In this document: positions 48,210 through 63,184 of the stretch, piece by piece
Layout of the letters: every line of letters begins with the position of its first letter
Position numbering within the stretch: the stretch's first letter is position 1
Virus record (IMG/VR): IMGVR_UViG_3300036770_003657
Location: 124,001-188,000 of that record
Strand: one strand, 5' to 3'
DNA: 64,000 nt
The notes under the pieces: generated by a model
Told to the model about the DNA's origin: nothing
The model's database searches: none
The model's input: the letters and a program-made list of their open reading frames with translations, nothing else
Translations under genes and position numbers: made by a program

Positions 48210-49003
48210 ATAATGGAGTTTTAATTTTTGCTCAAAATGGAAATTTTGATTATGTTAAGCTAGCTGAATTATCTGCACTTAGAGTAAAAGAATACTTGGA
48301 CTTACCAGTTAGCTTAGTAACTAATATTAAGTATCAGAATAAAGATAGTGTTTTTGATAAAATTATTAATATAAAGTCTAAACAGTCGCAAATTAGAAAT
48401 ATACACGATGGAAACAATTCAAATAGAGTTAAATGGCTAAACTTTGATCGTCATTTAAGTTATGAACTTAGCCCTTATGACAAAACTTTAGTTATTGATG
48501 CAGATTATTTAGTTTCTTCAAACAATCTAATGTATTGCTTTGAATCTAATAAAGAATTTCTGATCTATAATAAAGATTATTATTTCATTGAAAATGTATT
48601 TGAAAAGAATTTTAAGTATATTAATGAATTTGGAATACCTTTTTATTGGGCCACTGTATTTTATTTTACTAAGACAGAAAAAAATAAATTATTTTTTAAA
48701 TTTATAGAGTATATTAAGGATAATTGGGACTATTATAGGGTGTTGTATTCAATTATAGATAGTAAGTTTAGGAACGACTTTGCTTTTAGCATAGCAATTA
48801 ATCTATTACATAATCAATTATCAAATAAAGAGTTTGGATTTATTCCTGGTAAGCTATTTTATACAATAGATAAAGATAGTTTAATTATGAATGAAAGTGA
48901 AACTATGGGATTTTATCTTCACAATAACTCTTGTGTTAAGACTAAAGGGTTAGATGTTCATGTAATGAACAAAAAAAGTATAGTTAGGGTATTAAATGAA
49001 TAA
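48206..49003 (+). CDS. Putative nucleotide-sugar transferase (GT-A like)
   Basis: GVLIFAQN..YVKLA..SPYDKTLVIDADY (DxD)..YWATVFYF..RNDFAFSIA. Confidence 0.55.
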   Translation: MNNGVLIFAQNGNFDYVKLAELSALRVKEYLDLPVSLVTNIKYQNKDSVFDKIINIKSKQSQIRNIHDGNNSNRVKWLNFDRHLSYELSPYDKTLVIDADYLVSSNNLMYCFESNKEFLIYNKDYYFIENVFEKNFKYINEFGIPFYWATVFYFTKTEKNKLFFKFIEYIKDNWDYYRVLYSIIDSKFRNDFAFSIAINLLHNQLSNKEFGFIPGKLFYTIDKDSLIMNESETMGFYLHNNSCVKTKGLDVHVMNKKSIVRVLNE

Positions 49004-49814
49004 AGGTCATCTTATTTTTGCCCAAAATTCTTCAATAAATTATGTCAGACAGGCGTATGCTCTTGCTTTGAGTATTAAAAAGTTTAATAAAATCAACAAA
49101 GTCTGTTTAGTAACTAATGATGCAGTTCCGTTAGAGTACATTAAAGCCTTTGATCATATAGTTCCTATACCCTGGGGAGATATGTCATCTAATTCTGAAT
49201 GGAAAATAGAGAATAGATGGAAATTAATATATGCTAGCCCCTTCAAAGAAAATTTAGTTTATGATTCTGACATGATTTTACTGAGTAGCAATGATCATTA
49301 TTGGTATCATTTAGATAGTTATGATATAGCATTAACTCAAAATGTTAGAGATTATAAAGGAAATAAAATAACTTCAAGTAATAATCCTTATAGAAAAGTC
49401 TTCTTTAATAACAATTTACCAGATGTTTATTTTGGCTTACATTATTTTAAAAAAAATAGTATAAGTTTTGAGTTTTACAAATGGTTAGAACACATAATAA
49501 AAAATTGGGACTTATTTTCTCAAGAATTTACTAAAAAATCTAGACAAAAAACTGCTAGTTTAGATGTGGCAAGTTCGCTTGCTGTTAATTTTGGGGATTT
49601 TAAAATTGCTAATGATATATTGTCCTTTGTACATATGAAACCTTTAATACAAGGTTGGGAAATAAGTAATATAGAATCTTGGACAGATCATATAATATAT
49701 GATTTTAATCAGAATTGTGTGTTAAGTATGGCCAATACAATTCAATCAGGAATATTTCATTATACTGATGACAAATTTTTATCAAATGATATCATTAAGT
49801 TCTTAGAGAAGTAA
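48996..49814 (+). CDS. Putative nucleotide-sugar transferase, paralogue of the upstream gene
   Basis: GHLIFAQN..YVRQA..SPFKENLVYDSDM (DxD)..YFGLHYF. Confidence 0.55.
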   Translation: MNKGHLIFAQNSSINYVRQAYALALSIKKFNKINKVCLVTNDAVPLEYIKAFDHIVPIPWGDMSSNSEWKIENRWKLIYASPFKENLVYDSDMILLSSNDHYWYHLDSYDIALTQNVRDYKGNKITSSNNPYRKVFFNNNLPDVYFGLHYFKKNSISFEFYKWLEHIIKNWDLFSQEFTKKSRQKTASLDVASSLAVNFGDFKIANDILSFVHMKPLIQGWEISNIESWTDHIIYDFNQNCVLSMANTIQSGIFHYTDDKFLSNDIIKFLEK

Positions 49815-49815
49815 T

Positions 49816-50349
49816 ATGAATAATGAAATTATATTAGAACCTATTATATTACCTACTCAAGTGTTTTATTTATATTATAATAATGAAGGTTATATTACTG
49901 AGTTATTGAATTATAAAAAAGACACTGGAAATTATATTGAGGTTAGTGATGAATTTGTAGTCAGTTTTAGAGAAAGTAATAAAGATCTATCTAATTTTAA
50001 AGTTGAAATTGATAATAGCTGTAGAATTATTAGGAATGATAATTTATATAATCAACGTTTTTATTTTATAATATATGAAACAGATGATATTACAGATTTA
50101 GTTATTCTTATAGGTAAAAAGGAACTTTTGTTTACATTGTCATCTAACTTAGGATATAATTTACAAGATAGTGCAACATTCTCCTTTTATATAGTAAGTA
50201 AAATTAATCCTAATTTTTTACTAGTTAACATTCCTATTAAGTATGGAGATTTAAAAAAAGGATATAGATTTAAATATAAGTTTGACAACCAAAAAGAAAT
50301 AATAACGACAGTCAAATATTTTAATTCTTATAAAATAAAATATGAGTAA
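49816..50349 (+). CDS. Hypothetical protein (177 aa)
   Basis: Operon-embedded ORF; no recognisable motif. Confidence 0.65.
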   Translation: MNNEIILEPIILPTQVFYLYYNNEGYITELLNYKKDTGNYIEVSDEFVVSFRESNKDLSNFKVEIDNSCRIIRNDNLYNQRFYFIIYETDDITDLVILIGKKELLFTLSSNLGYNLQDSATFSFYIVSKINPNFLLVNIPIKYGDLKKGYRFKYKFDNQKEIITTVKYFNSYKIKYE

Positions 50350-51271
50350 AAAAATAAAGCTAATTGATTGTGATTTAATTTATTTAAGTTACGATGAACC
50401 AAACAAAGAACGCAATTATGCTGATTTGAAGAAAAAATTTCCTTGGGCTAAACGTGTAGATGGGGTGCATGGTAGCGATAGTGCTCATAAGGCCTGTGCT
50501 AGACTGGCTGAAACTGATCGTGTAACTATTATTGATGGTGATAATATCGTTAAACCTGAGCTAATGAATCAAGTTATTGAGTTAATTGATACGGCAGATA
50601 CTAGCATATGTGTTTTAAGTTTTCCTGCACAAAATATTATCAATGGTTTAATATATGGCAACGGTAGTATTAAAAATTGGCCTACACAGTTAGTGTTAGA
50701 TATGCGTACGCATGAAAATGCAGATCCCTCTAATGATAAAACACAGGTAGATTTTTGTTGGGAAATAAAATATCTTCAAATGAATAATTGGATGAGTTGG
50801 GTTCATAATAATTCTAGTCCACATCAAGCATGGAGAGCAGGATTTCGTGAAGGTGTTAAAATGAGCTTGTTAGAAGGATCCAAACCTAGTTTAGATAAAC
50901 CATTTGATAAACAGGTACATTGGAAAAACTATCATAGACTACTAGCTTGGATGAACGTAGGTAGTGATGCAGATAATGGACTATGGGCAATTTACGGGGC
51001 AAGGCTAGGATGTTATATGACCTTGCTAACAGATTGGGATCATTTAAATGTTAGGACCTTTAGTTATCTCAATGATTTATATGCTAGAATTCAACCTTCA
51101 AGTACTGAAGCATTAATATTAGAAATTAGTAGATTGGGAAAGGAGCTTAAGGAAGGTCTTGGTATTCTTACAGGTCCAAGTTTTTTAGATGTAGATCAAT
51201 CTAAATATTTTAAGTCTGTATACACTAATCCACCAAGGCTTAAAAGTGATTGGATAGTAGAAAATGTATGA
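50342..51271 (+). CDS. Putative glycosyltransferase-like protein (DGD motif)
   Basis: LSYDEPN..RVDGVHG..AHKACA..IIDGDN..YGNGSIK..AWRAGFREGVK. Confidence 0.5.
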   Translation: MSKKIKLIDCDLIYLSYDEPNKERNYADLKKKFPWAKRVDGVHGSDSAHKACARLAETDRVTIIDGDNIVKPELMNQVIELIDTADTSICVLSFPAQNIINGLIYGNGSIKNWPTQLVLDMRTHENADPSNDKTQVDFCWEIKYLQMNNWMSWVHNNSSPHQAWRAGFREGVKMSLLEGSKPSLDKPFDKQVHWKNYHRLLAWMNVGSDADNGLWAIYGARLGCYMTLLTDWDHLNVRTFSYLNDLYARIQPSSTEALILEISRLGKELKEGLGILTGPSFLDVDQSKYFKSVYTNPPRLKSDWIVENV

Positions 51272-51959
51272 TATGGTCTTCATAAGTTACTCGGAGCCAA
51301 ATGCAGAAGATAATTGGACAAAATTAAAAACAAGGTTTTCTCTAGCAAAACGTGTTCATGGAGTAAAAGGTATACATCAAGCTCATATATTTGCTGCTAA
51401 AAAAGCGTTAACAAATATGTTTTGGGTTATTGATGGTGATGCTGAAATATTAGACACTTTTGATTTTAATTTTAGAATAAAGCAATATGATACCGTTTAT
51501 GTTTGGCGTAGTCTAAATCCTATTAACGACTTAGAATATGGAAATGGCGGAGTAAAGTTATTACCTAGAACAATGACAATAAATATGGATACTAGTAAAC
51601 CAGATATGACTACTAGTATAAGCAATAAATTTGTTCCTATGCATCAAGTTAGTAATATAACACGATTTAATACAGATGAGTTTAATACATGGAAAAGTGC
51701 TTTTAGAGAATGTGCTAAATTAGCAAGTAAGATTATTGACAGACAAAAAGTAGCTGAAACTGAATATAGATTAGATACTTGGTGTAAAATAGGTAAAGAT
51801 AGAACATATGGCATTTATGCATTGGAAGGTGCTATTCAAGGTAAAGCCTATGGGTTGGAATGCATGTCCAATAAAAGTAATTTATCCTTAATTAACGATT
51901 TTGAATGGCTTCGATCAAGATTTAATTTATATTATGAAACAGAACGAATCAAGCAGTGA
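51264..51959 (+). CDS. Putative glycosyltransferase-like protein, paralogue of the upstream gene
   Basis: ISYSEPN..RVHGVKG..AHIFAA..VIDGDA..YGNGGVK..TWKSAFRECAK. Confidence 0.5.
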   Translation: MYDMVFISYSEPNAEDNWTKLKTRFSLAKRVHGVKGIHQAHIFAAKKALTNMFWVIDGDAEILDTFDFNFRIKQYDTVYVWRSLNPINDLEYGNGGVKLLPRTMTINMDTSKPDMTTSISNKFVPMHQVSNITRFNTDEFNTWKSAFRECAKLASKIIDRQKVAETEYRLDTWCKIGKDRTYGIYALEGAIQGKAYGLECMSNKSNLSLINDFEWLRSRFNLYYETERIKQ

Positions 51960-52872
51960 AATAGATTGTTTTTATGGTTTAGAAGAATACTACAAATATA
52001 TTAGGAGATATAATATTAGTAGCTTCATACATGAATTAATTAATCTTACAATATTAGAAGATCCGTATCCGACTTTAAAAAGATTATTAGTTCAAGCTCA
52101 TAATCTTAAAAGTGAAGAATGGGTATATACAAAAAGTGTAACATTTTTTTTAAAATTATTAAAAAAAGAGTATTCACTAGTCGATTTGGCTAGTGTAGCA
52201 AGAAATTACTTTGAAAATGAAAAACTGTTTAGAATTATTCATGCTTATGAACGTAGTGGGAATGATTTACAAGGAATTGCAGATGGATTGAGTAGAGGTC
52301 AAGTCAAAAGTAAAATTTGGCTGATTAAGGAACTTATTCCTATTAAAAAACATTTTGATAATATACTAGTATTAGCTGGATGGTTTGGACAATTTAAGAT
52401 GTTATACGCTAACAGATGTACATATAAAAAAATGCGTATCATTGATATTGATAAAAATAATTGTAAAATTGGTGATGAAATATTTAATAATCAAGATTTA
52501 CAAGATTATAAAGTTAAAAGTATATGCGGTGATATCAATAATTTAGTATGTCATAAAAATGGGTATGAATTTGAGATAGAAAATTTTAAAACAGAGTCTT
52601 CATATAAGGAAAAATATCTTCCTAACTTAATTATTAATACAAGTTCTGAACATATGACTGAGGAATGGTTTTTTCAACTTAAATCTAAAAAGCTAGAAAG
52701 TAACCCACTAGTAGCTATACAGAGTAATAACTTATTTGATATTCCAGAACATATTAATTGTGTTTATAGTATTAATCATATGAAGAAAAAATTTCCTATG
52801 ACAGAGATATTATTTGAGGGAGAGCTTCAGTTAAAGGGATATAAGCGAGTAATGTTAATAGGAAGACCATGA
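51934..52872 (+). CDS. Class I SAM-dependent methyltransferase-like protein
   Basis: SRGQVKSKIWL..ILVLAGWFG (motif I-like), IIDID (motif II), LIINTSSEH. Start moved from the TTG at 51901 to the ATG at 51934. Confidence 0.6.
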   Translation: MKQNESSSEIDCFYGLEEYYKYIRRYNISSFIHELINLTILEDPYPTLKRLLVQAHNLKSEEWVYTKSVTFFLKLLKKEYSLVDLASVARNYFENEKLFRIIHAYERSGNDLQGIADGLSRGQVKSKIWLIKELIPIKKHFDNILVLAGWFGQFKMLYANRCTYKKMRIIDIDKNNCKIGDEIFNNQDLQDYKVKSICGDINNLVCHKNGYEFEIENFKTESSYKEKYLPNLIINTSSEHMTEEWFFQLKSKKLESNPLVAIQSNNLFDIPEHINCVYSINHMKKKFPMTEILFEGELQLKGYKRVMLIGRP

Positions 52873-53093
52873 TAGATTTAGATAAATTAGAACTGCGTGA
52901 TTTACAAAAGGAATCAGCTAGGGCATTGAGTGTTATGGAAGCTACCAATAATAATATATATAAATACAATATACAAGCTTATCATAACAGTCAAAATTGG
53001 TATAAAGCTGTAATAAAGGATTATATAAACCAATATGGAGATTTACCAAGTAAAACTGGACCTGCTAATTCAATAATACTTATTTTAGACTAA
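52869..53093 (+). CDS. Small hypothetical protein (74 aa)
   Basis: ATGA and TAATG coupling to both neighbours. Confidence 0.65.
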   Translation: MIDLDKLELRDLQKESARALSVMEATNNNIYKYNIQAYHNSQNWYKAVIKDYINQYGDLPSKTGPANSIILILD

Positions 53094-54268
53094 TGCTTTA
53101 TACATATCAAGAAATAAAAACAGTTCATCTAGAAATTACAGATTCTTGTAATGCTGCTTGTCCTATGTGTGCAAGGAATATTAATGGCGGAGAGGATAAT
53201 CCCCAGATGCCTAACACTGAACTAAGTATAAATGATATTAAAAAAATTTTTAAACCTATATTTATTAAACAACTTGAAAGAATATATATGTGCGGTAATT
53301 ATGGAGACCCAATTGCCGCTAAGGATACACTAGAAGTATTTGAATATTTTAGGCAGCATAATGAAAAGATTATGCTTAGTATGCATACCAATGGTAGTGC
53401 AAAAAAATCAGAATGGTGGACAAAGTTAGCTAAGGTATTAGGTCGTAAGGGATATGTTGTTTTTAGCATAGATGGCTTGGAAGATACTAATCATTTGTAT
53501 AGACAAAATACAATATGGTCTAAAATTATGGAAAATGCACAAGCGTTTATTAACGCAGGTGGTCGTGCTAGGTGGGACTATATTGTATTTGCTCATAATG
53601 AGCATCAAGTAGAACAAGCAGAGTTATTGGCTAAAGAAATGGGATTTGAACGTTTTCAATATAAAAAGTCTGCTAGATTTTTCAGTAATGTAGCAGGAAC
53701 AACTAAAGAAATGCATCAAGCTAGTAATCGTAAAGGTATGCAAACTGCTTTGCTTCAAATACCTTCTAGTCCTAAATATAGAAATGCTGCTTTAGATAAA
53801 ATGTCAGAAGTTGCAAAGGATAATACGGAAAAAATTAATTTCCTACCATCAAGAGTTAAAGATATTGAAGGAACATTAACTAAACAATATTTTAGTAAAG
53901 ATTCTAGTAAAAAAAAGCCAATGGAAAAAGAATGGGATAATGTTCCTATTAAGTGCAAAGTGTCAGAGGAAAAAAGTCTTTATATTTCAGCAGAAGGAAT
54001 AGTGCAACCATGTTGTTGGACAGCTGGCCAAATGTATCTTTGGTATTATGAACCTGAAGGGGGACAAATTTGGGATTATATTAAACAAGTAGGAAAAGAA
54101 AACCTTTCTGCGATACATTACGATTTAGAATCTATTGTAAATGGTAAATACATGCAAGAACTAATACCTAATAGCTGGAGTAAGCCTAGCTGTGCAGATG
54201 GTAAATTAGCTGTTTGTGCTAAGATATGTGGTACAAAATTTGACGCTTTTGCAGAACAATTTAAATGA
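53093..54268 (+). CDS. Radical SAM protein with C-terminal twitch/SPASM-like domain
   Basis: CNAACPMC; C-terminal IKC..SLYISAEGIVQPCCW..C..C...C. Confidence 0.9.
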   Translation: MLYTYQEIKTVHLEITDSCNAACPMCARNINGGEDNPQMPNTELSINDIKKIFKPIFIKQLERIYMCGNYGDPIAAKDTLEVFEYFRQHNEKIMLSMHTNGSAKKSEWWTKLAKVLGRKGYVVFSIDGLEDTNHLYRQNTIWSKIMENAQAFINAGGRARWDYIVFAHNEHQVEQAELLAKEMGFERFQYKKSARFFSNVAGTTKEMHQASNRKGMQTALLQIPSSPKYRNAALDKMSEVAKDNTEKINFLPSRVKDIEGTLTKQYFSKDSSKKKPMEKEWDNVPIKCKVSEEKSLYISAEGIVQPCCWTAGQMYLWYYEPEGGQIWDYIKQVGKENLSAIHYDLESIVNGKYMQELIPNSWSKPSCADGKLAVCAKICGTKFDAFAEQFK

Positions 54269-55251
54269 AACCTATAGCTATAAATTATGTTGATACTAGA
54301 AGGTATGATACAGTATATATAGATTGGACGTTGGGTAATTTTTGCAATTTTAAATGTAGTTATTGTCCAGATAATTTGCATAATAATTCAAATCCTATGG
54401 TAGAAATTGAAAAGGTAAAAAAATTTGTTAAACTAATGTTTGGTCATTATGCAAAACATCTGAATAAAAAATATTTTGTGTTTAATTTAATGGGCGGTGA
54501 ACCAACACTTTGGAAAAGTATAGAACCATTTATCATATGGGTTAAAGAGTATAGTAAAGATTTAGGAATAGTTTCATATATTGAAGTATTAACAAACGCT
54601 AGTAGAACTTTACGTTGGTGGAATGACTATGTAAAATATTTTGACTTTATAAAAATTACTCATCATACTGAATTCGCTAACCCTATTCATACGAGAACAG
54701 TTGCTGATCTTGCTATAGATAATGGAATAAACGCTACAGTGCAAGTTACTATGATACCTGCATTATGGAATAATTGTATAGAACATTTAGATCAAATTAA
54801 ACAAAGTAAACATGAATTCCAAATTGATGTAAAACCTTTACGTTTAGATTTCGGACCTCATCTATACGATTACACATCAGACCAACTTGCTTTCTTTAAA
54901 AAACTATATAGAAAAAATAACATTAAAAGTAGATTGTCAGGATCAATTGGAATGGGAAGTAAATTTTTATTTCCTGATAATACAGAAAAGCAAATTAGGT
55001 ATCAAGACTTGATTTCTAATAAAGAAAACTCTTGGGTAGACTGGAAATGTTGGGCAGGTTTAGATATACTTACTATAAGATCAGATGGATCTCTTAGAAT
55101 GGGAGGTGCTTGTCTAATGAAAGATAATGGGTTTTTTGATAAAAAAATTACAGATGATGATATTGTATTTAGAATTGACCCTATAATTTGTAAACAACAA
55201 TGGTGTAGTTGCTCACCTGATATGGAAACAAGGAAAGAAAATGTTAGATAA
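54265..55251 (+). CDS. Radical SAM protein with C-terminal Cys cluster
   Basis: CNFKCSYC, MGGEPT; WKCWAG..IRSDG..GGAC..ICKQQWCSC. Confidence 0.9.
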   Translation: MKPIAINYVDTRRYDTVYIDWTLGNFCNFKCSYCPDNLHNNSNPMVEIEKVKKFVKLMFGHYAKHLNKKYFVFNLMGGEPTLWKSIEPFIIWVKEYSKDLGIVSYIEVLTNASRTLRWWNDYVKYFDFIKITHHTEFANPIHTRTVADLAIDNGINATVQVTMIPALWNNCIEHLDQIKQSKHEFQIDVKPLRLDFGPHLYDYTSDQLAFFKKLYRKNNIKSRLSGSIGMGSKFLFPDNTEKQIRYQDLISNKENSWVDWKCWAGLDILTIRSDGSLRMGGACLMKDNGFFDKKITDDDIVFRIDPIICKQQWCSCSPDMETRKENVR

Positions 55252-56413
55252 TACAGTAATCTGTATGGTTCCATTTAGAGAATTACACATTAACAATAAT
55301 GGAAAATATAGAAATTGTTGTATACAACAAAATACAATGGGTAAAATTAATTTAAAAGTTAAGGATCCTAATTTGTGGTTTCAAATGCAACAAGACATGG
55401 TTGAGCTAAGAGCTGATTTAGAGCAAAATAAACGTCACTTAAATTGTATTAAATGCTGGAAATTAGAGGATGAAGGGCTATCATCTTATAGAATGAATTG
55501 GAATAATCAATACATATCTAATGGAGATACAGATCTTATACCTAGAATAGAAGTAATTGATTTAAGATTGGGTAATAGATGTAATCTTAAATGCAAAATG
55601 TGTAACTCAACTTGGAGTAATTTGATTTCTTCAGAAGTAGAAGAATTAAAAAAAATAGGAATTGATAATACTTATACTCAAATGCCAGTAATTGGTATAG
55701 TTAAACAATCTGATGATTTTATGGATGGATTATTTAACTTTATAAAACGCACTCCTACCATTAAAGAAATTAAGTTGGCAGGCGGTGAACCTTTTGTCAT
55801 GTCAGAAGTAGAGGAATTTATTCATAGGTTAGTTAAAGAAAATTTGACCAATTTTGAAATTAGTTTACTTACTAATGTGACTATTGTAAAAGATAGAATA
55901 ATAGAGGATTTAGAAAAATTTAAGAGCACTCATATACAATGTAGCATTGATGGTATTGGAAAATATTTAGAATATCAGCGAAGTCCTTCTAAATGGGAAG
56001 TAATTAGTAGAAATTTTGAAAGATTATATAATTCAAAGTTAACAGTAAATTTAACACCTTGCTGGAGTAATTTAAATATACTATCTGTAGCAGATTTTTT
56101 AGAATGGACTGCTAATTTCCCCAAAAGTCATGTTGCATACAACGAAGTAAATAAACCATCATACCTTGATTGGAGATTAGTTCCTATAAAAGAAAGAAAT
56201 GAAGTTATTGATAAATTAAAAAAATTAAAATTACATACTAAAGTACATAGGGATTATACCAAATTAATCAATAAGTTTCAGTATGAAGTAAGAGATTATC
56301 TACAAGAAGAAATAATACAGTATTCTGATGCAATTATAGCATGGAATAGATTCGGTAAAGTACAATATCAAGAGTTATATCCTTGGAACTCAAGAATATT
56401 AAATAGCATATGA
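55241..56413 (+). CDS. Radical SAM protein with N-terminal twitch-like domain
   Basis: CMVPF..NGKYRNCC..CIKC precedes DLRLGNRCNLKCKMC; AGGEPF. Confidence 0.9.
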   Translation: MLDNTVICMVPFRELHINNNGKYRNCCIQQNTMGKINLKVKDPNLWFQMQQDMVELRADLEQNKRHLNCIKCWKLEDEGLSSYRMNWNNQYISNGDTDLIPRIEVIDLRLGNRCNLKCKMCNSTWSNLISSEVEELKKIGIDNTYTQMPVIGIVKQSDDFMDGLFNFIKRTPTIKEIKLAGGEPFVMSEVEEFIHRLVKENLTNFEISLLTNVTIVKDRIIEDLEKFKSTHIQCSIDGIGKYLEYQRSPSKWEVISRNFERLYNSKLTVNLTPCWSNLNILSVADFLEWTANFPKSHVAYNEVNKPSYLDWRLVPIKERNEVIDKLKKLKLHTKVHRDYTKLINKFQYEVRDYLQEEIIQYSDAIIAWNRFGKVQYQELYPWNSRILNSI

Positions 56414-57813
56414 ATAATTCATACCCTTCAAAGACTTGGTGTATACTTCCCTGGGTGCATTTAAGTACAAGACCAGATGGTAGTATGCGTGTTTGTTGTA
56501 CAGCCAATGCAAGTGGTGTAGGACCTAGTAATGATTTTAAAATAGGTGGTCCACAAGTTGGTGTTTTAAAAGATGATCAAGGGTTACCTAGTAATTTAAA
56601 CATATTAGACTTTAAAAGTGCTTGGAATAGTACTTATATGAAAAATGTACGAAAGCAAATGCTAGCGGGTGAAAAGCCTGCTAGTTGTTTAAAATGTTAT
56701 AAAGAAGAAGATGCTGGTCATAATAGCAAAAGAATGTGGGAAACTGAATACTGGAAGCAAAGAGTTAGTATAGATAAATTAATAGAAAATACTGAAGACG
56801 ATGGATCTGTTCCACCTGAGTTAACTTATATAGATTTAAGATTTGGAACTAAATGTCAATTAGCTTGTATTATGTGCAGTCCACATGATAGTTCAGGATG
56901 GATTAAGGATTGGCAAACTGTTTATCCTACATTAGAAAATCAAGGTGTAAAAAAGATTTGGCAATGGGATAATAAAGGTAGTATTAATGGCAGTAGTTAT
57001 AACTGGCATAAAAATAATCCTGTATTTTGGAAACAGTTTTACGAACAAATACCGCACATGCAGCAGGTGTATTTTGCAGGGGGTGAACCTTTAATTATTG
57101 ATGAGCATTACGAAATACTTGAAGAAATTATAAGACAGGGCAAAGCCAAAGATATAGAAATTCGTTATAATAGTAACGGTGTAGAATGGAGGGATGATTT
57201 ATTTGACTTATGGAAACATTTTAAAATAGTGAGATATCATTATAGTGTAGATAGCATAAATTCAATGAATGAATATATCCGCTACCCAAGTAAATGGGAA
57301 AGGACATCTGAAGTATTTAAGATTTTAGATGAACAAACATCTGATAATGTTGAGGTTACTGTAGCCTGTGCAGTGCAAGCGTTAAATATATATTATATCC
57401 CTGATTTTTTACGTTGGAAATTAGAACAAAATTTTAAGAAAGTTAATATGTGGCCGTTAGGTGCTGGAGGAATAAACTATCACTTTGTGTACTGGCCTGC
57501 TTTTTTAAACGTAAAGGTTTTACCTAACTGGTTCAAAGACGAATGTGAAAGAAAATACAAAGAGTTTATACCTTGGTTTGAAAATAACTGGGAGTTATGT
57601 TTAGCTGAAAAAGATAGAGGTAAAGTTTCCAAAGATAAGTGGTTAACTAATTCCTATGGTATTAAACGACTTAGAGGAATGATAAGTTTTATGAAATCTG
57701 AAGATTGGAGTCAACGTTTACCAGAAATGAAAGACTATTTAGAAAAAATTGACAGACACAGAGATACTAGTTTTTATCAAATTTTTCCAGAAATGGCTAA
57801 AATTTTTACTTAG
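56410..57813 (+). CDS. Radical SAM protein with N-terminal twitch-like domain
   Basis: CILPW..DGSMRVCC..CLKC precedes DLRFGTKCQLACIMC; AGGEPL. Confidence 0.9.
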   Translation: MNNSYPSKTWCILPWVHLSTRPDGSMRVCCTANASGVGPSNDFKIGGPQVGVLKDDQGLPSNLNILDFKSAWNSTYMKNVRKQMLAGEKPASCLKCYKEEDAGHNSKRMWETEYWKQRVSIDKLIENTEDDGSVPPELTYIDLRFGTKCQLACIMCSPHDSSGWIKDWQTVYPTLENQGVKKIWQWDNKGSINGSSYNWHKNNPVFWKQFYEQIPHMQQVYFAGGEPLIIDEHYEILEEIIRQGKAKDIEIRYNSNGVEWRDDLFDLWKHFKIVRYHYSVDSINSMNEYIRYPSKWERTSEVFKILDEQTSDNVEVTVACAVQALNIYYIPDFLRWKLEQNFKKVNMWPLGAGGINYHFVYWPAFLNVKVLPNWFKDECERKYKEFIPWFENNWELCLAEKDRGKVSKDKWLTNSYGIKRLRGMISFMKSEDWSQRLPEMKDYLEKIDRHRDTSFYQIFPEMAKIFT

Positions 57814-57821
57814 GATAGTTT

Positions 57822-58829
57822 ATGTACGAATCTTTACACGGAGATCCAATAGTTTTTGCTAAAGTAGAAAAGGATTTAAGATTTCTTCATTCTAGATGGC
57901 AAAAAAGTGATACTTATGCTGAACCTCATGAAGGTTATATGATGCATTTAAGAAATCCTGATGTAGTAGACAATATAGCAAAAAACCTTGAACCTGCTAA
58001 GATGTTCACAGATGAACAAAGTTCTTTTAATCGAGATGAGTTATCTTGGCTTTATGGATTTGCTTTTAGTCAATGTTTGAATGTAAGGCATAATGCAAAT
58101 GGAACAATATTTTTGTCCGGTAATTTACATAAAATTGCCGAAAAGTTTATAGATAAGTTATCTAAAATTTTGCCAGGTTGTGAAAATAGTCCTAGTGTAG
58201 CAGGAAATTTTTTAATTACGCCTAGTCAATATGGTCTTCATACAGATAGTACTAGAGAGACAGATTGGATGGATAGTTTAAATAAAATTTCTGTAAATGA
58301 TTCAAGAAGAAGATATGTGCCATGGAGAAATATTCTAATACCAATATGGATAGGGGGAAACCCAGACACTGTAAGTCATGCTGTATTTTTTGATCAGCGT
58401 CATATAGATTTTGCTCATGTTTATCTTCATGGAAGACCTTACGCTAAGGATCCAGCAACTACATACCCTATTGTTTACAATCATTCTGATGTAGTTTTTC
58501 ATAATGAATTAGGAGAAATTATACCTAATGAGAGAAATCTTTTATCTTATGATAAAGAACATCATAAAAAATATTTGTATTATACACCATATAGCAGATT
58601 AACTGGGTTAACACCATCTTTAACTACAGAATGGATACCAGGTAAACCATTTGTTTTTGATGCATTTCAATTACATGCTACTAATAAAGGTACAGAAGTT
58701 GAATATGGGTATAAACATGTAAGTATAAACAAAGAAGGAAAGGAACTCTCATCAAGAATAGAATTTAAGCATAAAACATGGGACGTTAAAATGGGACTTC
58801 TATTAACTTTTTTACGTGAGGTAGTATGA
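57822..58829 (+). CDS. Putative 2OG-Fe(II) oxygenase-like protein
   Basis: HxD (GLHTDS) and distal His (FVFDAFQLHAT) in a DSBH-like spacing. Confidence 0.5.
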   Translation: MYESLHGDPIVFAKVEKDLRFLHSRWQKSDTYAEPHEGYMMHLRNPDVVDNIAKNLEPAKMFTDEQSSFNRDELSWLYGFAFSQCLNVRHNANGTIFLSGNLHKIAEKFIDKLSKILPGCENSPSVAGNFLITPSQYGLHTDSTRETDWMDSLNKISVNDSRRRYVPWRNILIPIWIGGNPDTVSHAVFFDQRHIDFAHVYLHGRPYAKDPATTYPIVYNHSDVVFHNELGEIIPNERNLLSYDKEHHKKYLYYTPYSRLTGLTPSLTTEWIPGKPFVFDAFQLHATNKGTEVEYGYKHVSINKEGKELSSRIEFKHKTWDVKMGLLLTFLREVV

Positions 58830-60028
58830 AATCTAAAACATTTTGTGTTATGCCTTGGAATAGTATTGCTACTAATGCTTCTGGAATTTATAGAGTTTGT
58901 TGCAATAGTACTCCTGGGAAAAACGTAATTAATGATGATAATGGACAACCAACAAAAATTTTTAAAAATAGTCCTAGCCAAATTTGGAACTCTTATACAT
59001 ATAAAAAAATAAGGGCAGAAATGTTATCTAATGTTCGTCCTGAAATGTGTGAAAGATGTTTTAAGGAAGAAGATTCTGGAATCGAATCTGCTAGAATGAA
59101 TTGGAATAAACGTTGGTATAACGAGTCAAAAAATTACGATGTGATAGAAAAAAATATGGACATTCAGTATATAGATTTAAGATTAGGAAATCTATGTAAC
59201 CTAAAATGTAGAATGTGCAATCCTTACAGTAGTAGCCAATGGGTAGATGAATGGAATCAGGTAGTCGATACTGCTGAACTTGTTCCTAATTTTAAAATTT
59301 CGGATGATGAGAGTGTACGTTTATCTAGCCTAGATTGGCCTACTCGTTCTAAAACTTGGGAAAATATTATAGAAATTGCAGATACTATAGAAGAGATATA
59401 TCTAACTGGTGGAGAACCAACTCTTGCTATAGAGCAATATAAACTATTTGAAATTTTGAAACAAAAAAAATTAACAAAGAAAATTAAGTTAAAATATAAT
59501 ACAAATTTAACAAATATCCCTAAAAAAATGATAGATTATTGGAGATATTTTAAGAAGATTCAAATTAATGCTAGTATAGATGCGTTTGCTGATTTAAATC
59601 GTTATATTAGGTTTCCTACTTCATGGGATATGGTAGACAAAAATATAGAAAAATTTGTAAATATGAAAAATGTTGAAGTACAGTTGCACTGTACTGTTCA
59701 AATGTATAATATATTAAAGCTTCATGAATTATTTGAATGGATGAAAAAGTTTCAATCTATAAAACTGTATTTAAATATTTTAAATCATCCAAGATCTATG
59801 AATATTAGAGTCCTACCAAAAGAACTTAAAATTATAGCAGAAGAAAATTTGCAAGATTATTTAGATCTTCCTAAGGTGGAGCAAGTGATAAAATATATGA
59901 ATGATAAGGATGAGAGTGAATTTTTAAATGAATTTTTTAATTACACAATAAAGTTAGACCAATTACGTAAACAAAATCTATTTAACTTGGTACCAGAACT
60001 AGAAAAATATTATGTTCGGAGCGAGTAA
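58826..60028 (+). CDS. Radical SAM protein with N-terminal twitch-like domain
   Basis: CVMPW..SGIYRVCC..CERC precedes DLRLGNLCNLKCRMC; TGGEPT. Confidence 0.9.
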   Translation: MKSKTFCVMPWNSIATNASGIYRVCCNSTPGKNVINDDNGQPTKIFKNSPSQIWNSYTYKKIRAEMLSNVRPEMCERCFKEEDSGIESARMNWNKRWYNESKNYDVIEKNMDIQYIDLRLGNLCNLKCRMCNPYSSSQWVDEWNQVVDTAELVPNFKISDDESVRLSSLDWPTRSKTWENIIEIADTIEEIYLTGGEPTLAIEQYKLFEILKQKKLTKKIKLKYNTNLTNIPKKMIDYWRYFKKIQINASIDAFADLNRYIRFPTSWDMVDKNIEKFVNMKNVEVQLHCTVQMYNILKLHELFEWMKKFQSIKLYLNILNHPRSMNIRVLPKELKIIAEENLQDYLDLPKVEQVIKYMNDKDESEFLNEFFNYTIKLDQLRKQNLFNLVPELEKYYVRSE

Positions 60029-61254
60029 TGAAACATTTGGTTTGTAGTAAAATGTGGACAGATGTTAATATCAATATTCCCACTAAGGAAATTAAAAATT
60101 GTTGTAAACGTCAATCGGCTAAAATTTCCTTAGAAGATTTAAAAACATATGGTAAAAATATCTTCACTAAACACGAGTTATTAGAAAACGATAAAAGATT
60201 TATGATACAGGAAAACAAGTTACCAGACGCTTGTTATGGTTGTAAAATTACATGGCCAAATTCTCTTTGGTCAGTTTGGAACTTATGGAAGGAAAAAGAA
60301 TGGTCTAAAGATGAATTGTATAGACTAATTGATGAAGATAAGGTATACCAAATAGAAATAATGTTAGGTATTACTTGTAATCAAGCCTGTATGTATTGTA
60401 CAGAATATGTAAGTAGTAAATGGGCAGACATAAAAAGAATTGATATAAAGCCTGATGACGAATGGGAAAACCTCGCTTTAACGAATTTATACAATTATAT
60501 AGAGAATGATAGATATAATGATAGCAACTCTATATTATATAATTTTTTAGGAGGAGAGCCTTTTTTAGAACCTAAGATTTTTGAAGTCATTGAAAATTTA
60601 ATTAAAATTCATAAAGATAAAAATGTTCAATATAAAAGAATTAATATAAACATGACTACAAATCTTAATATCAAACCTAAAACTATTGATAGATATTTAG
60701 AAATGGTTTCAGGCAATCGAGAAATTTCTTGGAGTTTAAGTGCTAGTATAGATTCTTTAGGTAAACAAGGTGAGGAAATTAGAGACGGTTTAATTTTTTC
60801 TAGATTTGAGCATAATTTAGAAAAGATTTATGAATCAAATATGTTTACAACTATAAGTTTGTTACCATCTGTAAGTGCTTTAAGTATACCAAATAAGATT
60901 GATTTAATTAAATGGTTTTTTAATTTGTCTTTTAGATATAAAAAACCTAACGAATTTGGACATTCATTTAATATTGCTTCTAATATTGTTACATGGCCTG
61001 ATGCCATGCACCCAGGTATACTCACTGATGAATATAAGTCTGAAATTGACAAATGTATTAATTACATTGATAATTTAGATTCAACTAGTAATACTCAAAA
61101 ATATAAAAACCATCTTATTAATTTACGTAATATAATTGGTACTAAAAGGCAGACAAGTTATTTGGAAAGTTCAAGAAAATGGTATCAAGATCAAGGTAGA
61201 TTAAAAGGAAAAGATTATTTTGAAATTTTTCCGTTTTTAAATGTAATTTTATGA
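60028..61254 (+). CDS. Radical SAM protein with N-terminal twitch-like domain
   Basis: CSKMW..IKNCC..CYGC precedes MLGITCNQACMYC; LGGEPF. Confidence 0.88.
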   Translation: MKHLVCSKMWTDVNINIPTKEIKNCCKRQSAKISLEDLKTYGKNIFTKHELLENDKRFMIQENKLPDACYGCKITWPNSLWSVWNLWKEKEWSKDELYRLIDEDKVYQIEIMLGITCNQACMYCTEYVSSKWADIKRIDIKPDDEWENLALTNLYNYIENDRYNDSNSILYNFLGGEPFLEPKIFEVIENLIKIHKDKNVQYKRININMTTNLNIKPKTIDRYLEMVSGNREISWSLSASIDSLGKQGEEIRDGLIFSRFEHNLEKIYESNMFTTISLLPSVSALSIPNKIDLIKWFFNLSFRYKKPNEFGHSFNIASNIVTWPDAMHPGILTDEYKSEIDKCINYIDNLDSTSNTQKYKNHLINLRNIIGTKRQTSYLESSRKWYQDQGRLKGKDYFEIFPFLNVIL

Positions 61255-62645
61255 GCAATATCTCTATTAATTTTGTTACAGTAAAACAAAATAGATTAGA
61301 CAAGATACTTTTTGTATTTTGGAATGATTATTTTTATAATTCAAAAAAGTATTCTAATGATTTTAATTATGCCAATGACTTCATGCTTATGACACAAATG
61401 CTATCTAATAGCATGTTATATCATAATTATGATAGAATATTATGTTATAATTTAGAAGAAGCTTTAGAATTAGGACGAGCAGCAGGATTTAAACATGCTG
61501 TAATTCAGACTCCAGGGAGTGTTATTAATAAAAATTTTGATAAAATAATTTTAGATTATGTTAAAAGTAAGGACTATTTTTTAATTGGTCATATTTTAGA
61601 TGGTAAGCCTAAGAACAAATACTTATATATACACGAACAACTGTTTGTTATAAATTTAGAAAAAATATTAAATTTTGATTATATTATTGACAAGGAATGT
61701 AAGACAGAAAGAACATTTAATAATTATATTAGAAGTGAGTATAATTTTCATGATGATTATACACCTTTATGGATTAAGAAAACAAATGGCAGTATTACAA
61801 CAAAAAATTATAATTGGTCTGCTTCATATTTGAGTTATGGACTTGAAGTAGATGGGCTTTTCACATTTAGTCATAATATAAGATCCAGTAAACTGCATAT
61901 GTATCCTGAAAATAAAAACCATAAAGAAACATGGTATAGTGAGATCAATGAAAATAATCAATTAAAAAATATTATAGATAATGCATATAAAGTTGATAGA
62001 ACTAATCATATTTTTAATAATGAGAATTTTTCTAAAATATCAGCAAAAGCAGTTAGTTCTAAAATAGATACGTTAGTCTTGCCTGCTAGTGGATTTTATT
62101 CAGTTCATGCTTTTTCTCATTTTAGGCCTACTAAAATAATTTATTATGATATAGACAATGTTACTCTTAAGGCTAGAAAGTTAATTAATGAAACTTGGAA
62201 TGGTGTTGATAATATTGACTTCGGCGATCTTTCTGTAAATATTTTTCAAGATAAAAATGTCAACAATATACAACTTGTTGATAATGAATGGATTAAAACT
62301 AGAGAAGAAGCTTTAGAAATATGGAAAGATTTTCAAAAAGTTGACAAAGTGTACCATAATATTGATATTATAGAAGATTATGATAAACTTTTAGGAATTT
62401 TGCCTGATAATAATATGTTTATTTGGTTAAATAGTATATATACTTATAGTACAAATATTTGGAACCATAGACCTAGTAAGATATTTAAATCTTATTTTTC
62501 TCTTGTATATAGACTTATTGATTTCAAAAGTCAAATTTGGATAGATGTAAAAGAGCCTATGGGACAATATCGTTGTTTTGAAGTACATAAATATAGTCCA
62601 GATGCTGTAGCTATGTCTTATGCTAATTATAAAAAATTTATATGA
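61251..62645 (+). CDS. Hypothetical 464-aa protein, possible Rossmann/methyltransferase-like C-terminal half
   Basis: ATGA-coupled ORF; LVLPASG..IIYYDID segment. Confidence 0.5.
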   Translation: MSNISINFVTVKQNRLDKILFVFWNDYFYNSKKYSNDFNYANDFMLMTQMLSNSMLYHNYDRILCYNLEEALELGRAAGFKHAVIQTPGSVINKNFDKIILDYVKSKDYFLIGHILDGKPKNKYLYIHEQLFVINLEKILNFDYIIDKECKTERTFNNYIRSEYNFHDDYTPLWIKKTNGSITTKNYNWSASYLSYGLEVDGLFTFSHNIRSSKLHMYPENKNHKETWYSEINENNQLKNIIDNAYKVDRTNHIFNNENFSKISAKAVSSKIDTLVLPASGFYSVHAFSHFRPTKIIYYDIDNVTLKARKLINETWNGVDNIDFGDLSVNIFQDKNVNNIQLVDNEWIKTREEALEIWKDFQKVDKVYHNIDIIEDYDKLLGILPDNNMFIWLNSIYTYSTNIWNHRPSKIFKSYFSLVYRLIDFKSQIWIDVKEPMGQYRCFEVHKYSPDAVAMSYANYKKFI

Positions 62646-63184
62646 TTATTGCTGGTAATAAAAACTATGGGCTCGCTAAAGAATTATATAAATATTATCC
62701 TGATGCCTTTTTTGCTAGTAGAACTACAGGATTTGATTTAACTAATTCTACTGATCAAAAAAAGTTAGCAGATTTAGTTTTGGAAAACAAAGTTTTTATT
62801 AATTGTAGTGCTTTATGGAAGTTTAATCAAACTGTTTTATTAGACATAGTTTATAAAAAATGTTTAGAAAATAGTCATAGACCTTACATAATAAATGTTG
62901 GATCAACAACAGATCGTGTAAAAAAAGGGGGGTCTTGGTTATATAATGCTGAAAAGAAAGCATTGAGAGATTATAGTAATACTTTAGGTATAAATGGAGT
63001 ATGGGATAAGGGACCGAAAGTGACCTTAATAAGTTTTGGGTCATTATCAAATGTACAGCAAAAGCATCCTAGTAGAAAATGTATTCCTATTGATATTGCT
63101 GCTTCCTATATAAAATGGATTTTAGAACAGCCTGAAAGTTTATGCATAAATGAAATAAGTATTGACCCGGTACAGTTTATATGA
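62642..63184 (+). CDS. Short-chain dehydrogenase/reductase-like protein
   Basis: IIAGNKNYGLA, FINCSA, IINVGST, catalytic YxxxK (YNAEK), VTLISFG. Confidence 0.75.
   Translation: MIIAGNKNYGLAKELYKYYPDAFFASRTTGFDLTNSTDQKKLADLVLENKVFINCSALWKFNQTVLLDIVYKKCLENSHRPYIINVGSTTDRVKKGGSWLYNAEKKALRDYSNTLGINGVWDKGPKVTLISFGSLSNVQQKHPSRKCIPIDIAASYIKWILEQPESLCINEISIDPVQFI

Follow-up and report, generated by a model that had tools for sequence, protein, structure and literature searches.

The SPASM and twitch domains of radical SAM enzymes, which hold auxiliary iron-sulfur clusters, are described as C-terminal extensions (PMC9012708). The archetypal twitch enzyme, BtrN (2-deoxy-scyllo-inosamine dehydrogenase of the butirosin pathway; PDB 4M7S/4M7T), acts on an aminocyclitol and the other well-studied member, MoaA, acts on GTP, whereas SPASM enzymes, with a 7-8 Cys two-cluster motif, are mostly peptide maturases (PMC9012708), such as SkfB, CteB, SuiB, anSME and PqqE. 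BlsE (cytosylglucuronic acid decarboxylase of blasticidin S; PDB 7VOB) acts, like MoaA and viperin, on a nucleotide or sugar nucleoside, and both BlsE and MoaA have C-terminal auxiliary clusters. An uncharacterised subfamily with the twitch domain at the N-terminus is catalogued as NCBIfam NF033640 (‘twitch domain-containing radical SAM protein’, N_Twi_rSAM); as no function is assigned to it, membership explains nothing about chemistry. Phage genomes with several radical SAM genes have already been noted: a marine T4-like genome with 12 (PMC5332604), Aeromonas phage 332-Vera with eight inside its structural cluster (PMC12390700), Campylobacter CP220-group phages with several copies resembling protein A of the present work, and Vibrio phage K566 with five N-terminal-twitch genes. 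Those reports only count the genes: none identifies the permuted twitch domain, the constant gene core, the link to Bdellovibrionota, or a function.

Six radical SAM genes with two domain orders

We analysed a 64,000-nt window (positions 124,001 to 188,000 of IMG/VR record IMGVR_UViG_3300036770_003657), in which the initial annotation had reported six radical SAM enzymes within 8 kb, two with the auxiliary Cys cluster C-terminal and four with it N-terminal. This observation is confirmed. The six ORFs, here called A to F, each contain exactly one CxxxCxxC (Table 1), and of 122 stop-to-stop frames of 100 aa or more in the whole window only these six carry the motif, so that it is not due to chance. 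C to F all display the N-terminal pattern C-x17/18-CC-x42..62-CxxC, including the C..P[WF] / C..MW detail described initially. A seventh intact radical SAM was found just past the window end.

Table 1. Features of the island (window coordinates; Cys positions are residue numbers)
Feature	Coordinates	Strand	Length	Description
Cupin	47509..47865	+		Mannose-6-phosphate isomerase C-terminal type; first gene of the low-GC island
GT8-like pair	48206..49814	+		Two paralogous putative glycosyltransferases, 48206-49003 and 48996-49814
GT-A-like pair	50342..51959	+	309 and 231 aa	Two paralogues, 50342-51271 (309 aa) and 51264-51959 (231 aa), with a conserved DxD
MTase-like	51934..52872	+	312 aa	Rossmann/methyltransferase-like core partner (tentative); 312 aa from the ATG at 51934, 323 aa from the TTG at 51901
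74-aa protein	52869..53093	+	74 aa	Immediately upstream of A
A	53093..54268	+	391 aa	Core first (CxxxCxxC at 19), then C-terminal twitch-like domain (C288, C307, C308, C375, C379); core gene of the module
B	54265..55251	+	328 aa	Core first (motif at 27), then C-terminal Cys cluster (C262, C283, C309, C314)
C	55241..56413	+	390 aa	N-terminal twitch domain (C8, C26, C27, C69, C72), then core (motif at 114); variable accessory member
D	56410..57813	+	467 aa	N-terminal twitch domain (C11, C29, C30, C93, C96), core (motif at 149), C-terminal helical extension
X	57822..58829	+	335 aa	Non-radical-SAM protein between D and E; invariant H140-x-D142...H285
E	58826..60028	+	400 aa	N-terminal twitch domain (C7, C25, C26, C75, C78), then core (motif at 124)
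F	60028..61254	+	408 aa	N-terminal twitch domain (C6, C25, C26, C69, C72), then core (motif at 117); divergent accessory member
Y	61251..62645	+	464 aa	
Z	62642..63184	+	180 aa	Short SDR-like oxidoreductase; invariant Ser88, Tyr101 and Lys105
Seventh radical SAM	about 66167-67372			Past the window end (19758-20963 of L007)

We first compared the six proteins with family models. Pfam Radical_SAM (PF04055) scored above its gathering cutoff for A (39.7 bits), C, D and E, and just below it for B (27.2) and F (25.3, cutoff 29.5). The N-terminal-twitch family mentioned in the initial annotation indeed exists: against NF033640 (cutoff 170 bits) C scored 243.8, D 424.6 and E 381.2, all over the full model length; E, aligned over 1-398 of 398 positions, is the most typical member here. 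F scored 152, below the cutoff but aligned over 4-395 of 398 profile positions, while A and B are not members and matched only the core part of the model. Pfam SPASM gave weak hits on the auxiliary domains, at residues 288-358 of A and, above its cutoff (22.4 bits), at 7-78 of E.

That the six might all fall in characterised families with routine functions, or be inactive remnants, had been named beforehand as what would refute the initial reading; neither was the case. None of the six reached the cutoff of any characterised (equivalog) NCBIfam family (MoaA 39 bits or less against about 284, viperin 39 or less against 180), and B reached the cutoff of no NCBIfam family. PADLOC returned only partial viperin-core matches. 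Every cluster-ligand Cys is conserved in orthologues down to 22–30% identity: those of A are invariant, and ligand Cys are conserved in 37–41 of 42 sequences for B, 8 of 8 for C (all eight Cys), 20 of 20 for E and 12–13 of 14 for F. The AF2 models of A (pLDDT 93) and D (pLDDT 88.6) are confident and fall among the SPASM/twitch radical SAMs, although the closest solved structures had TM-scores of only 0.3–0.5. The best PDB match of A was BlsE (E=1.2e-12, TM 0.45–0.54, TMt 0.54), with further matches to SuiB, SkfB and anSME; those of D were SkfB, CteB, BlsE and MoaA at TM 0.3–0.35. Sequence identity to BlsE, MoaA and viperin is 13–16%.

We then examined the auxiliary domain separately. A profile of the N-terminal domain alone hit in the PDB only the C-terminal twitch domain of BtrN (residues 165-239, E=3.8e-4), with all four ligand Cys aligned and the same C-x17-C...CxxC spacing. 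The same domain is homologous to the C-terminal domain of A (hhalign 89%, E=2.3e-6), and the two domain orders therefore use one domain type. For B, the first hairpin of the C-terminal region aligned with the twitch profile (P=4.6e-4 against 0.41 for the control). Like BtrN, these proteins have two clusters and a fully Cys-ligated auxiliary site, as judged from sequence. In BtrN, however, the twitch domain follows the core, while in C to F it precedes it; the cores share only generic similarity and BtrN did not appear among the whole-protein fold or sequence hits. The proteins are also longer (390–467 aa against about 250 aa) and have extra C-terminal helices. In contrast to the SPASM peptide maturases, only 4–5 auxiliary Cys are present, enough for one cluster.

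A constant core in a variable island

The block forms the centre of a ~20-kb, probably co-transcribed, low-GC island (about window 47.5 kb to 67.4 kb) in a 399,796-bp contig of a jumbo myovirus, carrying sheath, tube, terminase, gp32, UvsX and UvsY genes. Genes in the block overlap by 1–11 nt and no + strand terminator was found inside it. The island is bounded by UvsX/UvsY and ThyX, the cupin having a UvsY-like upstream neighbour.

The cupin matched PF01050 (E=7.7e-19) and TIGR01479 GMP_PMI in the C-terminal part only. The GT8-like family profile hit glycogenin-1 and glycogenin-2 (GT8) at E=4e-4 over the nucleotide-sugar half, including invariant D90 and D92. For the GT-A-like pair, a weak Pfam Glycos_transf_2 match (E=0.0013) covered the DxD region of the first protein, and D57 and D59 are nearly invariant; none of 4558 homologues is named and no PDB hit was obtained. 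The only PDB hits of the MTase-like profile were weak (spermidine synthase and MJ0882 over the nucleotide-binding motif, E about 0.2). X matched nothing in Pfam, NCBIfam, PHROG or PDB; its triad, invariant in 13 orthologues, is compatible with a non-haem Fe(II) oxygenase, but this is inference only. Y had no family or PDB match and reciprocal best hits in 10 loci. Z gave weak NCBIfam SDR hits, a profile match to PDB SDRs at E=0.044, and reciprocal best hits in 24 loci at a median of 68% identity. Just past the window lie Methyltransf_24 and an Asp/Arg-hydroxylase-like fusion, and the proteins of the island include 2OG-oxygenase-like ones.

Eighty related viral loci carry a median of 8 and up to 12 radical SAM genes per 21 kb, and the core gene set occurs in hundreds of uncultured phages. 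Among 83 related loci, reciprocal best hits were found for A in 76 (median 52% identity), for B in 54 (median 26%), for the MTase-like protein in 61 and for C in only 8. D is the most conserved gene of the island, with 3677 homologues, many at 71–87% identity, across hundreds of contigs. A, D and usually B, with one GT-A-like and one MTase-like protein, form a constant core, while C, E and F belong to a rapidly exchanged pool of at least 67 radical SAM orthogroups.

The same core sits in chromosomes of Bdellovibrionota, predatory bacteria, where D orthologues reach 52–60% identity and an adjacent GT-A-like gene about 41%. Of 30 full bacterial loci, 17 hold a reciprocal best hit of the MTase-like protein and only 14 have the GT-A-like gene within 8 kb of D; the GT8-like genes are almost absent from the bacterial versions. 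A mini-version was found in the cultured Ralstonia phage RsoM2USA, in which GT-like genes (the GT8-like homologues being syntenic, at 35–38% identity), one N-terminal-twitch radical SAM and the MTase-like gene lie beside virion genes.

The interpretation offered initially, a multi-step radical pathway in a virus, is partly supported. The element is viral, SPASM/twitch domains are described as C-terminal and the N-terminal-twitch family is catalogued; what is not shown is that the six act as one sequential pathway. A constant core plus alternative tailoring enzymes fits the data at least as well as a linear six-step route. The 74-aa protein, proposed initially as a substrate, is an unlikely obligatory one: its 26 orthologues (59% mean column identity) have 14 invariant residues spread over the whole length, no Cys and no variable core, and it is present in only 28 of 83 loci and absent from the Bdellovibrionota loci inspected.

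Candidate substrates of the module

Protein or peptide modification is possible but less likely than action on sugars. In this view, the enzymes would modify a ribosomal product (the 74-aa protein, a virion protein such as the 6000-aa collagen-like fibre, or a precursor encoded elsewhere) by cross-linking, epimerisation or C-H functionalisation, as in RiPP and anSME-type maturases. The fold matches to SkfB, CteB, SuiB and anSME, the conserved ORF abutting A, the Asp/Arg beta-hydroxylase-like, nitroreductase-like and PP-loop/Asn-synthase-like genes of related loci (all of which also occur in peptide pathways), the protein-glycosylating glycogenin in GT8, the location of the radical SAM genes among structural genes in 332-Vera and a giant (G-V/I-Q)n protein encoded 30 kb upstream speak for it. 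However, no PqqD/RRE-like domain, leader peptidase or exporter was detected by the Pfam and NCBIfam searches, the auxiliary Cys correspond to a twitch rather than to a SPASM domain, no convincing precursor peptide was found, the genes are packed too tightly to hide another short ORF, and the neighbouring giant structural protein of RsoM2USA is not collagen-like; the properties of the 74-aa protein described above also argue against it.

Nucleotide or DNA hypermodification, giving a modified and possibly glycosylated base that protects phage and predator DNA from nucleases, seems more doubtful. The UvsX/UvsY and ThyX borders, QueC-like PP-loop ATPases and carbamoyltransferases in related loci, and fold matches to the nucleotide-acting MoaA, viperin, TYW1 and BlsE would agree with it, and jumbo phages and predatory bacteria may both have reason to mark their own DNA. 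Yet in the island we found no DpdA/TGT-like transferase, QueD or QueE equivalog, hydroxymethylase, or base- or DNA-binding domain; the QueE and viperin matches cover only the generic core, far below the cutoffs, the QueC-like hits are weak or faint, and ThyX, UvsX and UvsY are ordinary T4-type neighbours. Equally doubtful is lipid or lipopolysaccharide remodelling, or synthesis of a free nucleoside- or aminoglycoside-like compound during infection or predation. The similarity to BtrN and BlsE points to antibiotic-type sugar chemistry, carbamoyltransferase, halogenase-like and AMP-binding genes sit near some arrays, the Asp/Arg-hydroxylase family includes the lipid A hydroxylase LpxO, a PagP gene lies inside the K566 array region, and B, C and D gave weak matches to the tetraether lipid synthase model; but all these matches are weak and generic, and the island has no transporter, resistance, acyl-carrier or lipid A genes. 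Finally, public annotations call relatives ‘MoaA/NifB/PqqE/SkfB family’, ‘QueE’ or ‘heme biosynthesis domain’, but routine housekeeping enzymes (MoaA, QueE, NrdG, viperin) or inactive duplicates are contradicted by the equivalog scores, the Cys conservation and the high identity of D across contigs, and are very unlikely.

We tentatively favour BtrN-like oxidative tailoring of sugars in a glycan pathway, without considering it more likely than not. Our analysis establishes that the six ORFs are intact twitch-type enzymes by sequence, that in C to F a BtrN-type domain with four invariant Cys, enough for one fully ligated auxiliary [4Fe-4S] cluster, sits before the core while a homologous domain follows it in A, and that a constant core shared with Bdellovibrionota is accompanied by quickly exchanged radical SAMs; catalysis, substrate and pathway are inferred. 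The twitch similarity to BtrN, the BlsE match of A and the sugar context in the same gene string (GT8-like and GT-A-like pairs, PMI-type cupin, SDR-like Z with Ser-Tyr-Lys, the genes just past the window, carbamoyltransferase and TauD in related loci) support this view, as do the operon-like packing, the constant core with its variable periphery and the location of the RsoM2USA and 332-Vera genes beside or among virion genes. On the other hand, similarity of the twitch domain does not determine the substrate, the best fold matches of D are peptide maturases, the GT assignments rest on weak or partial matches, the GT8-like genes are almost absent from the bacterial loci and the GT-A-like gene lies close to D in only some of them, as counted above, and no nucleotidyltransferase, 4,6-dehydratase, aminotransferase, flippase or polymerase typical of sugar pathways was found in the island.

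In this model, the island would build and tailor a carbohydrate. Each radical SAM enzyme would cleave SAM to the 5′-deoxyadenosyl radical and abstract one specific sugar C-H hydrogen, the auxiliary cluster taking the second electron, as proposed for BtrN, to give a keto-sugar or a rearranged sugar. The SDR-like, methyltransferase-like and oxygenase-like proteins would finish the sugar, and the GT8-like and GT-A-like proteins would attach it to an acceptor, which we consider most likely to be a virion surface protein and otherwise the cell envelope. The exchangeable paralogues would then vary the decoration between phage lineages.

The radical SAM genes and their auxiliary domain

We first examined the six adjacent + strand ORFs A to F, which are separated only between D and E by one further ORF, X. 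Neighbouring genes overlap by 1-11 nt or are 8 nt apart, and no + strand terminator candidate lies inside the block; promoter and terminator scans were at chance level. Each of the six proteins carries exactly one CxxxCxxC, the motif providing three Cys to the SAM-binding [4Fe-4S] cluster, and among all 122 stop-to-stop frames of 100 aa or more in the 64-kb window only these six carry it. In A and B the motif is located at residues 19 and 27 with further Cys near the C-terminus, while in C-F it lies at residues 114-149 and is preceded by C-x17/18-CC-x42..62-CxxC. The initial annotation, which had described six radical SAM ORFs in two opposite domain orders, is thus confirmed in its observation.

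Scores against Pfam Radical_SAM (PF04055, gathering score 29.5 bits) were 39.7 for A, 46.0 for C, 41.5 for D and 54.0 for E, whereas B (27.2) and F (25.3) fell just below; their motif, their NF033640 or PHROG radical SAM matches and their conserved Cys still place both in the superfamily. The N-terminal-twitch family mentioned in the initial annotation exists as NCBIfam NF033640, 'twitch domain-containing radical SAM protein'. C (243.8 bits), D (424.6) and E (381.2) pass its 170-bit whole-protein cutoff. F, with 152 bits, does not, although it is aligned over 4-395 of 398 positions and keeps the five N-terminal Cys: it behaves like a member without formally being one. A and B reach no family cutoff.

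An alignment restricted to the N-terminal ~100 residues of 28 diverse members shows exactly four invariant Cys (C11, C29, C93 and C96 in D numbering). Searched as a profile against all PDB sequences, it hits only BtrN (4M7S/4M7T; E=3.8e-4), over residues 165-239, the C-terminal twitch domain of this enzyme, with all four Cys in register. The same profile matches that of the C-terminal domain of A, in which C307, C308, C375 and C379 are invariant and C288 is conserved in at least 90% of sequences (hhalign, 89% probability, E=2.3e-6 over 70 columns). A narrower comparison gave P=6e-4 against 0.57 for a control segment. The C-terminal region of B matches only in the first hairpin (P=4.6e-4 against 0.41 for the control). 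SPASM/twitch domains are described as C-terminal extensions, the twitch being the one-cluster form studied in BtrN (an aminocyclitol substrate) and MoaA (GTP) (PMC9012708). In C-F, however, the domain occupies residues 1 to about 100, before the core, so that these proteins are natural permutants of a BtrN-type architecture, while A keeps the canonical order with a related domain. With only 4-5 conserved auxiliary Cys per protein, none has the seven- to eight-Cys, two-cluster SPASM motif including CX2CX5CX3C, and Pfam SPASM scores are mostly below the gathering score.

We then asked whether the six could be routine enzymes or inactive remnants, the condition set beforehand as refuting the interpretation of the initial annotation. 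Both possibilities are rejected. All ligand Cys are conserved in reciprocal-best-hit orthologues down to 22-30% identity. Equivalog-level profiles of prokaryotic viperin (pVip), QueE, MoaA and NrdG score far below their cutoffs, and a PADLOC scan for known defence families gave only partial viperin-core matches, covering about the first 100 of 257 pVip positions. Sequence searches of D and A against the PDB returned only generic, weak hits. AF2 models of D (pLDDT 88.6) and A (93.0) are confident, and Foldseek against the PDB places both among SPASM/twitch radical SAMs, but only at TM-scores of about 0.3-0.5: A matches BlsE (1.2e-12), then SuiB, SkfB, MoaA, anSME and viperin, and D matches SkfB, CteB, BlsE, MoaA, TYW1 and viperin. 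In BFVD the predicted fold of D is common among uncultured Caudovirales (TM 0.6-0.8) and present in KVP40, always under generic names. ESM Atlas look-ups returned only unnamed viral clusters.

Genomic context of the block

The window belongs to IMGVR_UViG_3300036770_003657, a contig of 399,796 bp. It is a myovirus, with a 1121-aa sheath 40-48% identical to those of PA5oct, Atu_ph07 and Phosso, a tube protein, a large terminase, gp32, UvsX and UvsY. Megablast of the block and of the structural region against 50,697 phage records found nothing, that is, no close cultured relative. The block lies in a low-GC island (25-31%, against 35-50% in the structural and replication region), which keeps the same strand and the same positive GC skew, starts after UvsY and, as read from L007 (a sequence of the same contig), runs past the window's end up to ThyX. 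Coordinates are collected in the table below.

Features of the window, of its continuation and of related loci
Feature	Sequence	Coordinates	Strand	Description
Giant ORF	window	4515-22517	+	single 6000-aa collagen-like protein
Low-GC island	window	47500-64000		begins at about 47.5 kb and runs past the window's end
GT8-like paralogue	window	48206-49003		putative glycosyltransferase
GT8-like paralogue	window	48996-49814		putative glycosyltransferase
312-aa protein	window	51901/51934-52872		Rossmann/MTase-like; ambiguous start: TTG at 51901 gives 323 aa and overlaps the previous gene by 59 nt, ATG at 51934 gives 312 aa
A	window	53093-54268	+	radical SAM
B	window	54265-55251	+	radical SAM
C	window	55241-56413	+	radical SAM
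D	window	56410-57813	+	radical SAM
X	window	57822-58829		inserted in the radical SAM row
E	window	58826-60028	+	radical SAM
F	window	60028-61254	+	radical SAM
Z	window	62642-63184		SDR-like, 180 aa
TATAAATA copies	window	36552, 44643, 52959, 62687	+	T4 late-promoter motif
TATAAATA copy	window	49867	-	T4 late-promoter motif
Island continuation	L007 (same contig)	16772-20963 (about window 63181-67372)		mostly beyond the window end
Mini-module	L006 (Ralstonia phage RsoM2USA, MG752970.1)	6247-12608		ORFs 347-354
N-twitch genes	L005 (Vibrio phage K566, OZ196521.1)	155157-180284		locus holding five N-twitch radical SAM genes in 17 kb
Double N-twitch fusion	L042 (related locus)	12646-15198		850-aa protein with two complete N-twitch radical SAM units

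Upstream of the radical SAM genes the island holds a PMI-type cupin, two GT8-like paralogues, two GT-A-like paralogues, the 312-aa protein and a 74-aa ORF. The family profile of the GT8-like pair hits glycogenin at E=4e-4, over about 100 residues only, with invariant D90 and D92 in a DxD motif, while Pfam, NCBIfam and PHROGs gave no match. Profiles of the GT-A-like family, of X and of Y found no solved relative, and that of the 312-aa protein gave only E of about 0.2 to spermidine synthase and a methyltransferase. X nevertheless keeps an invariant His140-x-Asp142...His285 across 13 orthologues, the pattern of a non-haem iron oxygenase, although no family or PDB match was found. Downstream lie Y, without assignment, and Z, in which G5, N6, G10, S88, Y101 and K105 are invariant, but which gave only weak SDR profile matches (E=0.001-0.04) and is short for an SDR. 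Past the window end the island continues with a 515-aa fusion protein carrying a C-terminal Asp/Arg beta-hydroxylase-like domain, a Methyltransf_24 protein, a 235-aa protein with an N-terminal GDS motif and a seventh radical SAM, of the B type; ThyX, on the opposite strand, ends the island.

The 74-aa ORF is uniformly conserved and has no Cys, and no RRE/PqqD match was found with Pfam or NCBIfam. A role as a RiPP precursor is not supported, although a precursor encoded elsewhere cannot be excluded. The T4 late-promoter motif TATAAATA is under-represented rather than enriched (5 copies against 13 expected). Two + strand copies sit just upstream of gene starts, 36581 (after the sheath gene) and 44682 (gp32), and one lies inside the 74-aa ORF, 134 nt before A.

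The giant collagen-like protein is 26% Gly, 21% Gln and 17% Val, with 3597 residues in 30 runs of G-x-y triplets (mostly GVQ/GIQ) separated by about 29 globular segments, which explains the high GC, the strong GC skew and the many shadow ORFs of this region. A link between such a fibre and the module was considered and rejected: the structural protein of more than 288 kDa adjacent to the RsoM2USA module has no G-x-y runs and no similarity to the giant ORF.

Related loci in viruses and Bdellovibrionota

D has 3677 homologues, many at 71-87% identity, on contigs of up to 353 kb; this unusually high conservation suggests that D may be an interaction hub. Eighty IMG/VR loci and four assembly loci were analyzed. 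Radical SAM-motif ORFs number a median of 8 and up to 12 per ~21 kb, and of 605 such ORFs 329 have the N-twitch pattern and 231 C-terminal Cys clusters. Besides D (the query, present in 80 of 83 loci), the constant partners are A (76 of 83), the 312-aa protein (61) and B (54). The two GT-A-like paralogues are found in 43 and 37 loci, and C, E, F, X, Y, Z and the 74-aa ORF in 8-28 loci each. The radical SAM repertoire turns over fast: the median Jaccard index of radical SAM orthogroups is 0.50 between loci whose D proteins are 85-95% identical and 0.27 at 75-85%, with 67 orthogroups in 43 loci. Accessory genes elsewhere encode carbamoyltransferase, TauD, Asp/Arg hydroxylase-like, nitroreductase-like and PP-loop/QueC-like proteins. 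Gene fusions also exist, namely the double N-twitch protein of L042 and a viral Atlas cluster of 699-aa carbamoyltransferase-radical SAM proteins.

A scan of one genome per species revealed full-length D orthologues at 52-60% identity in Bdellovibrionota, including complete 2-3-Mb chromosomes and a cultured Bdellovibrio isolate (genome-contig loci L103, L110, L113, L126, L129, L132 and about 40 further loci). They sit with A-like (46-48% identity), B-like, GT-A-like (about 41%) and 312-aa-like genes and with extra N-twitch paralogues. Of 30 full loci, 23 have A, 26 have B, 17 the MTase-like gene and 14 the GT-like gene, with a median of 4 radical SAMs; second loci in the same genomes hold 30%-identical N-twitch paralogues. 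The neighbours of the bacterial modules gave no informative Pfam hits. Higher-identity hits on contigs binned into MAGs labelled Neisseriaceae, Crocinitomicaceae, Rickettsiales, Gammaproteobacteria, Acidimicrobiaceae, Chloroflexota and others (among them L087, L088, L111, L120, L138 and L141) carry phage-type arrays, with 7-10 radical SAMs, 28-36% GC and the 74-aa gene, and are probably mis-binned jumbo-phage DNA. A quick tree nested the main viral clade within the bacterial sequences, but the AU test does not reject a single bacterial clade (p=0.74, the constrained tree being slightly better), so that no direction of transfer can be claimed.

Among cultured phages, RsoM2USA (343.8 kb) holds a syntenic mini-module with homologues of the window genes starting at 47829, 48206, 48996, 50342, 51264 and 51934 and a single N-twitch radical SAM, all annotated as hypothetical; it lies next to genes whose products were found in virions. 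In K566 the five N-twitch genes lie in 17 kb, with a PagP (lipid A palmitoyltransferase) gene and a nicotinamide phosphoribosyltransferase gene between them. KVP40-like phages have one N-twitch gene, and Campylobacter CP220-group phages have several A-like copies. Earlier papers only counted such genes: 12 in a marine T4-like genome (PMC5332604) and 8 in Aeromonas phage 332-Vera (PMC12390700), the latter not found by tblastn in the phage collection. Literature searches on the N-terminal twitch, the family name, radical SAM enzymes in jumbo or huge phages or in Bdellovibrio, and RsoM2USA found no functional study; the Bdellovibrio hits were irrelevant.

Possible roles of the island

The analysis itself establishes that the six genes encode intact twitch-type radical SAM enzymes, that the twitch domain is permuted between C-F and A, that the genes are packed like an operon, and that a constant core, shared with Bdellovibrionota, sits beside a variable periphery. 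What the enzymes do, including reductive cleavage of SAM by a bound [4Fe-4S] cluster, is inferred. We tentatively read the island as a carbohydrate-tailoring and carbohydrate-transfer system, in which the radical SAMs would carry out BtrN-like C-H abstraction or oxidation on sugars and the GT-like proteins would attach the products to a virion or envelope acceptor. The interpretation of the initial annotation is partly supported: a virus, an unknown substrate and a catalogued N-terminal-twitch family all hold, but that the enzymes form one multi-step pathway is not shown.

Modification of a peptide or protein seems less likely, and that of a nucleotide or DNA less likely still, but neither can be excluded, since the top fold matches include peptide maturases and nucleotide enzymes, no classical sugar-nucleotide pathway genes are present in the island, and the GT assignments are weak. 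The 74-aa protein is an unlikely obligatory substrate. A wider and more speculative view, which we consider less likely than not, although not excluded, is that the N-terminal-twitch radical SAMs and their C-terminal-twitch partners form a large, mostly viral toolbox of C-H-functionalising enzymes (at least 67 orthogroups in 43 loci) built around a constant D+A core shared with predatory Bdellovibrionota. It would make a so-far undescribed, lineage-variable hyper-modified biopolymer decoration (glycan, protein or DNA) that matters for attacking Gram-negative cells, and several of the subfamilies would catalyse reaction types not yet known for radical SAM enzymes.

Multi-radical-SAM phage islands and the NF033640 family have been noticed before but never explained. 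New here are the BtrN-type identity and permutation of the auxiliary domain, the constant core, its presence in predatory bacteria, and the identification of cultured carriers. Radical SAM enzymes carry out some of the hardest reactions in biology, and almost everything known about the twitch/SPASM branch comes from a dozen bacterial enzymes whose auxiliary domain lies at the C-terminus. As judged from sequence, a BtrN-type twitch domain works at either end of the core, a natural permutation that can be used to ask what the auxiliary cluster does. Uncultured jumbo phages devote 10-20 kb to as many as 12 such enzymes, and the constant core of the system is shared with predatory bacteria. As cultured carriers exist (RsoM2USA with its one-enzyme mini-module, K566 and Bdellovibrio isolates, for example strain HCB2-146, which carries the D/A module), the function is directly testable. 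If the product is a virion or envelope decoration, it would be a new layer of phage-host surface variation; if it is a DNA or peptide modification, it would be new chemistry.
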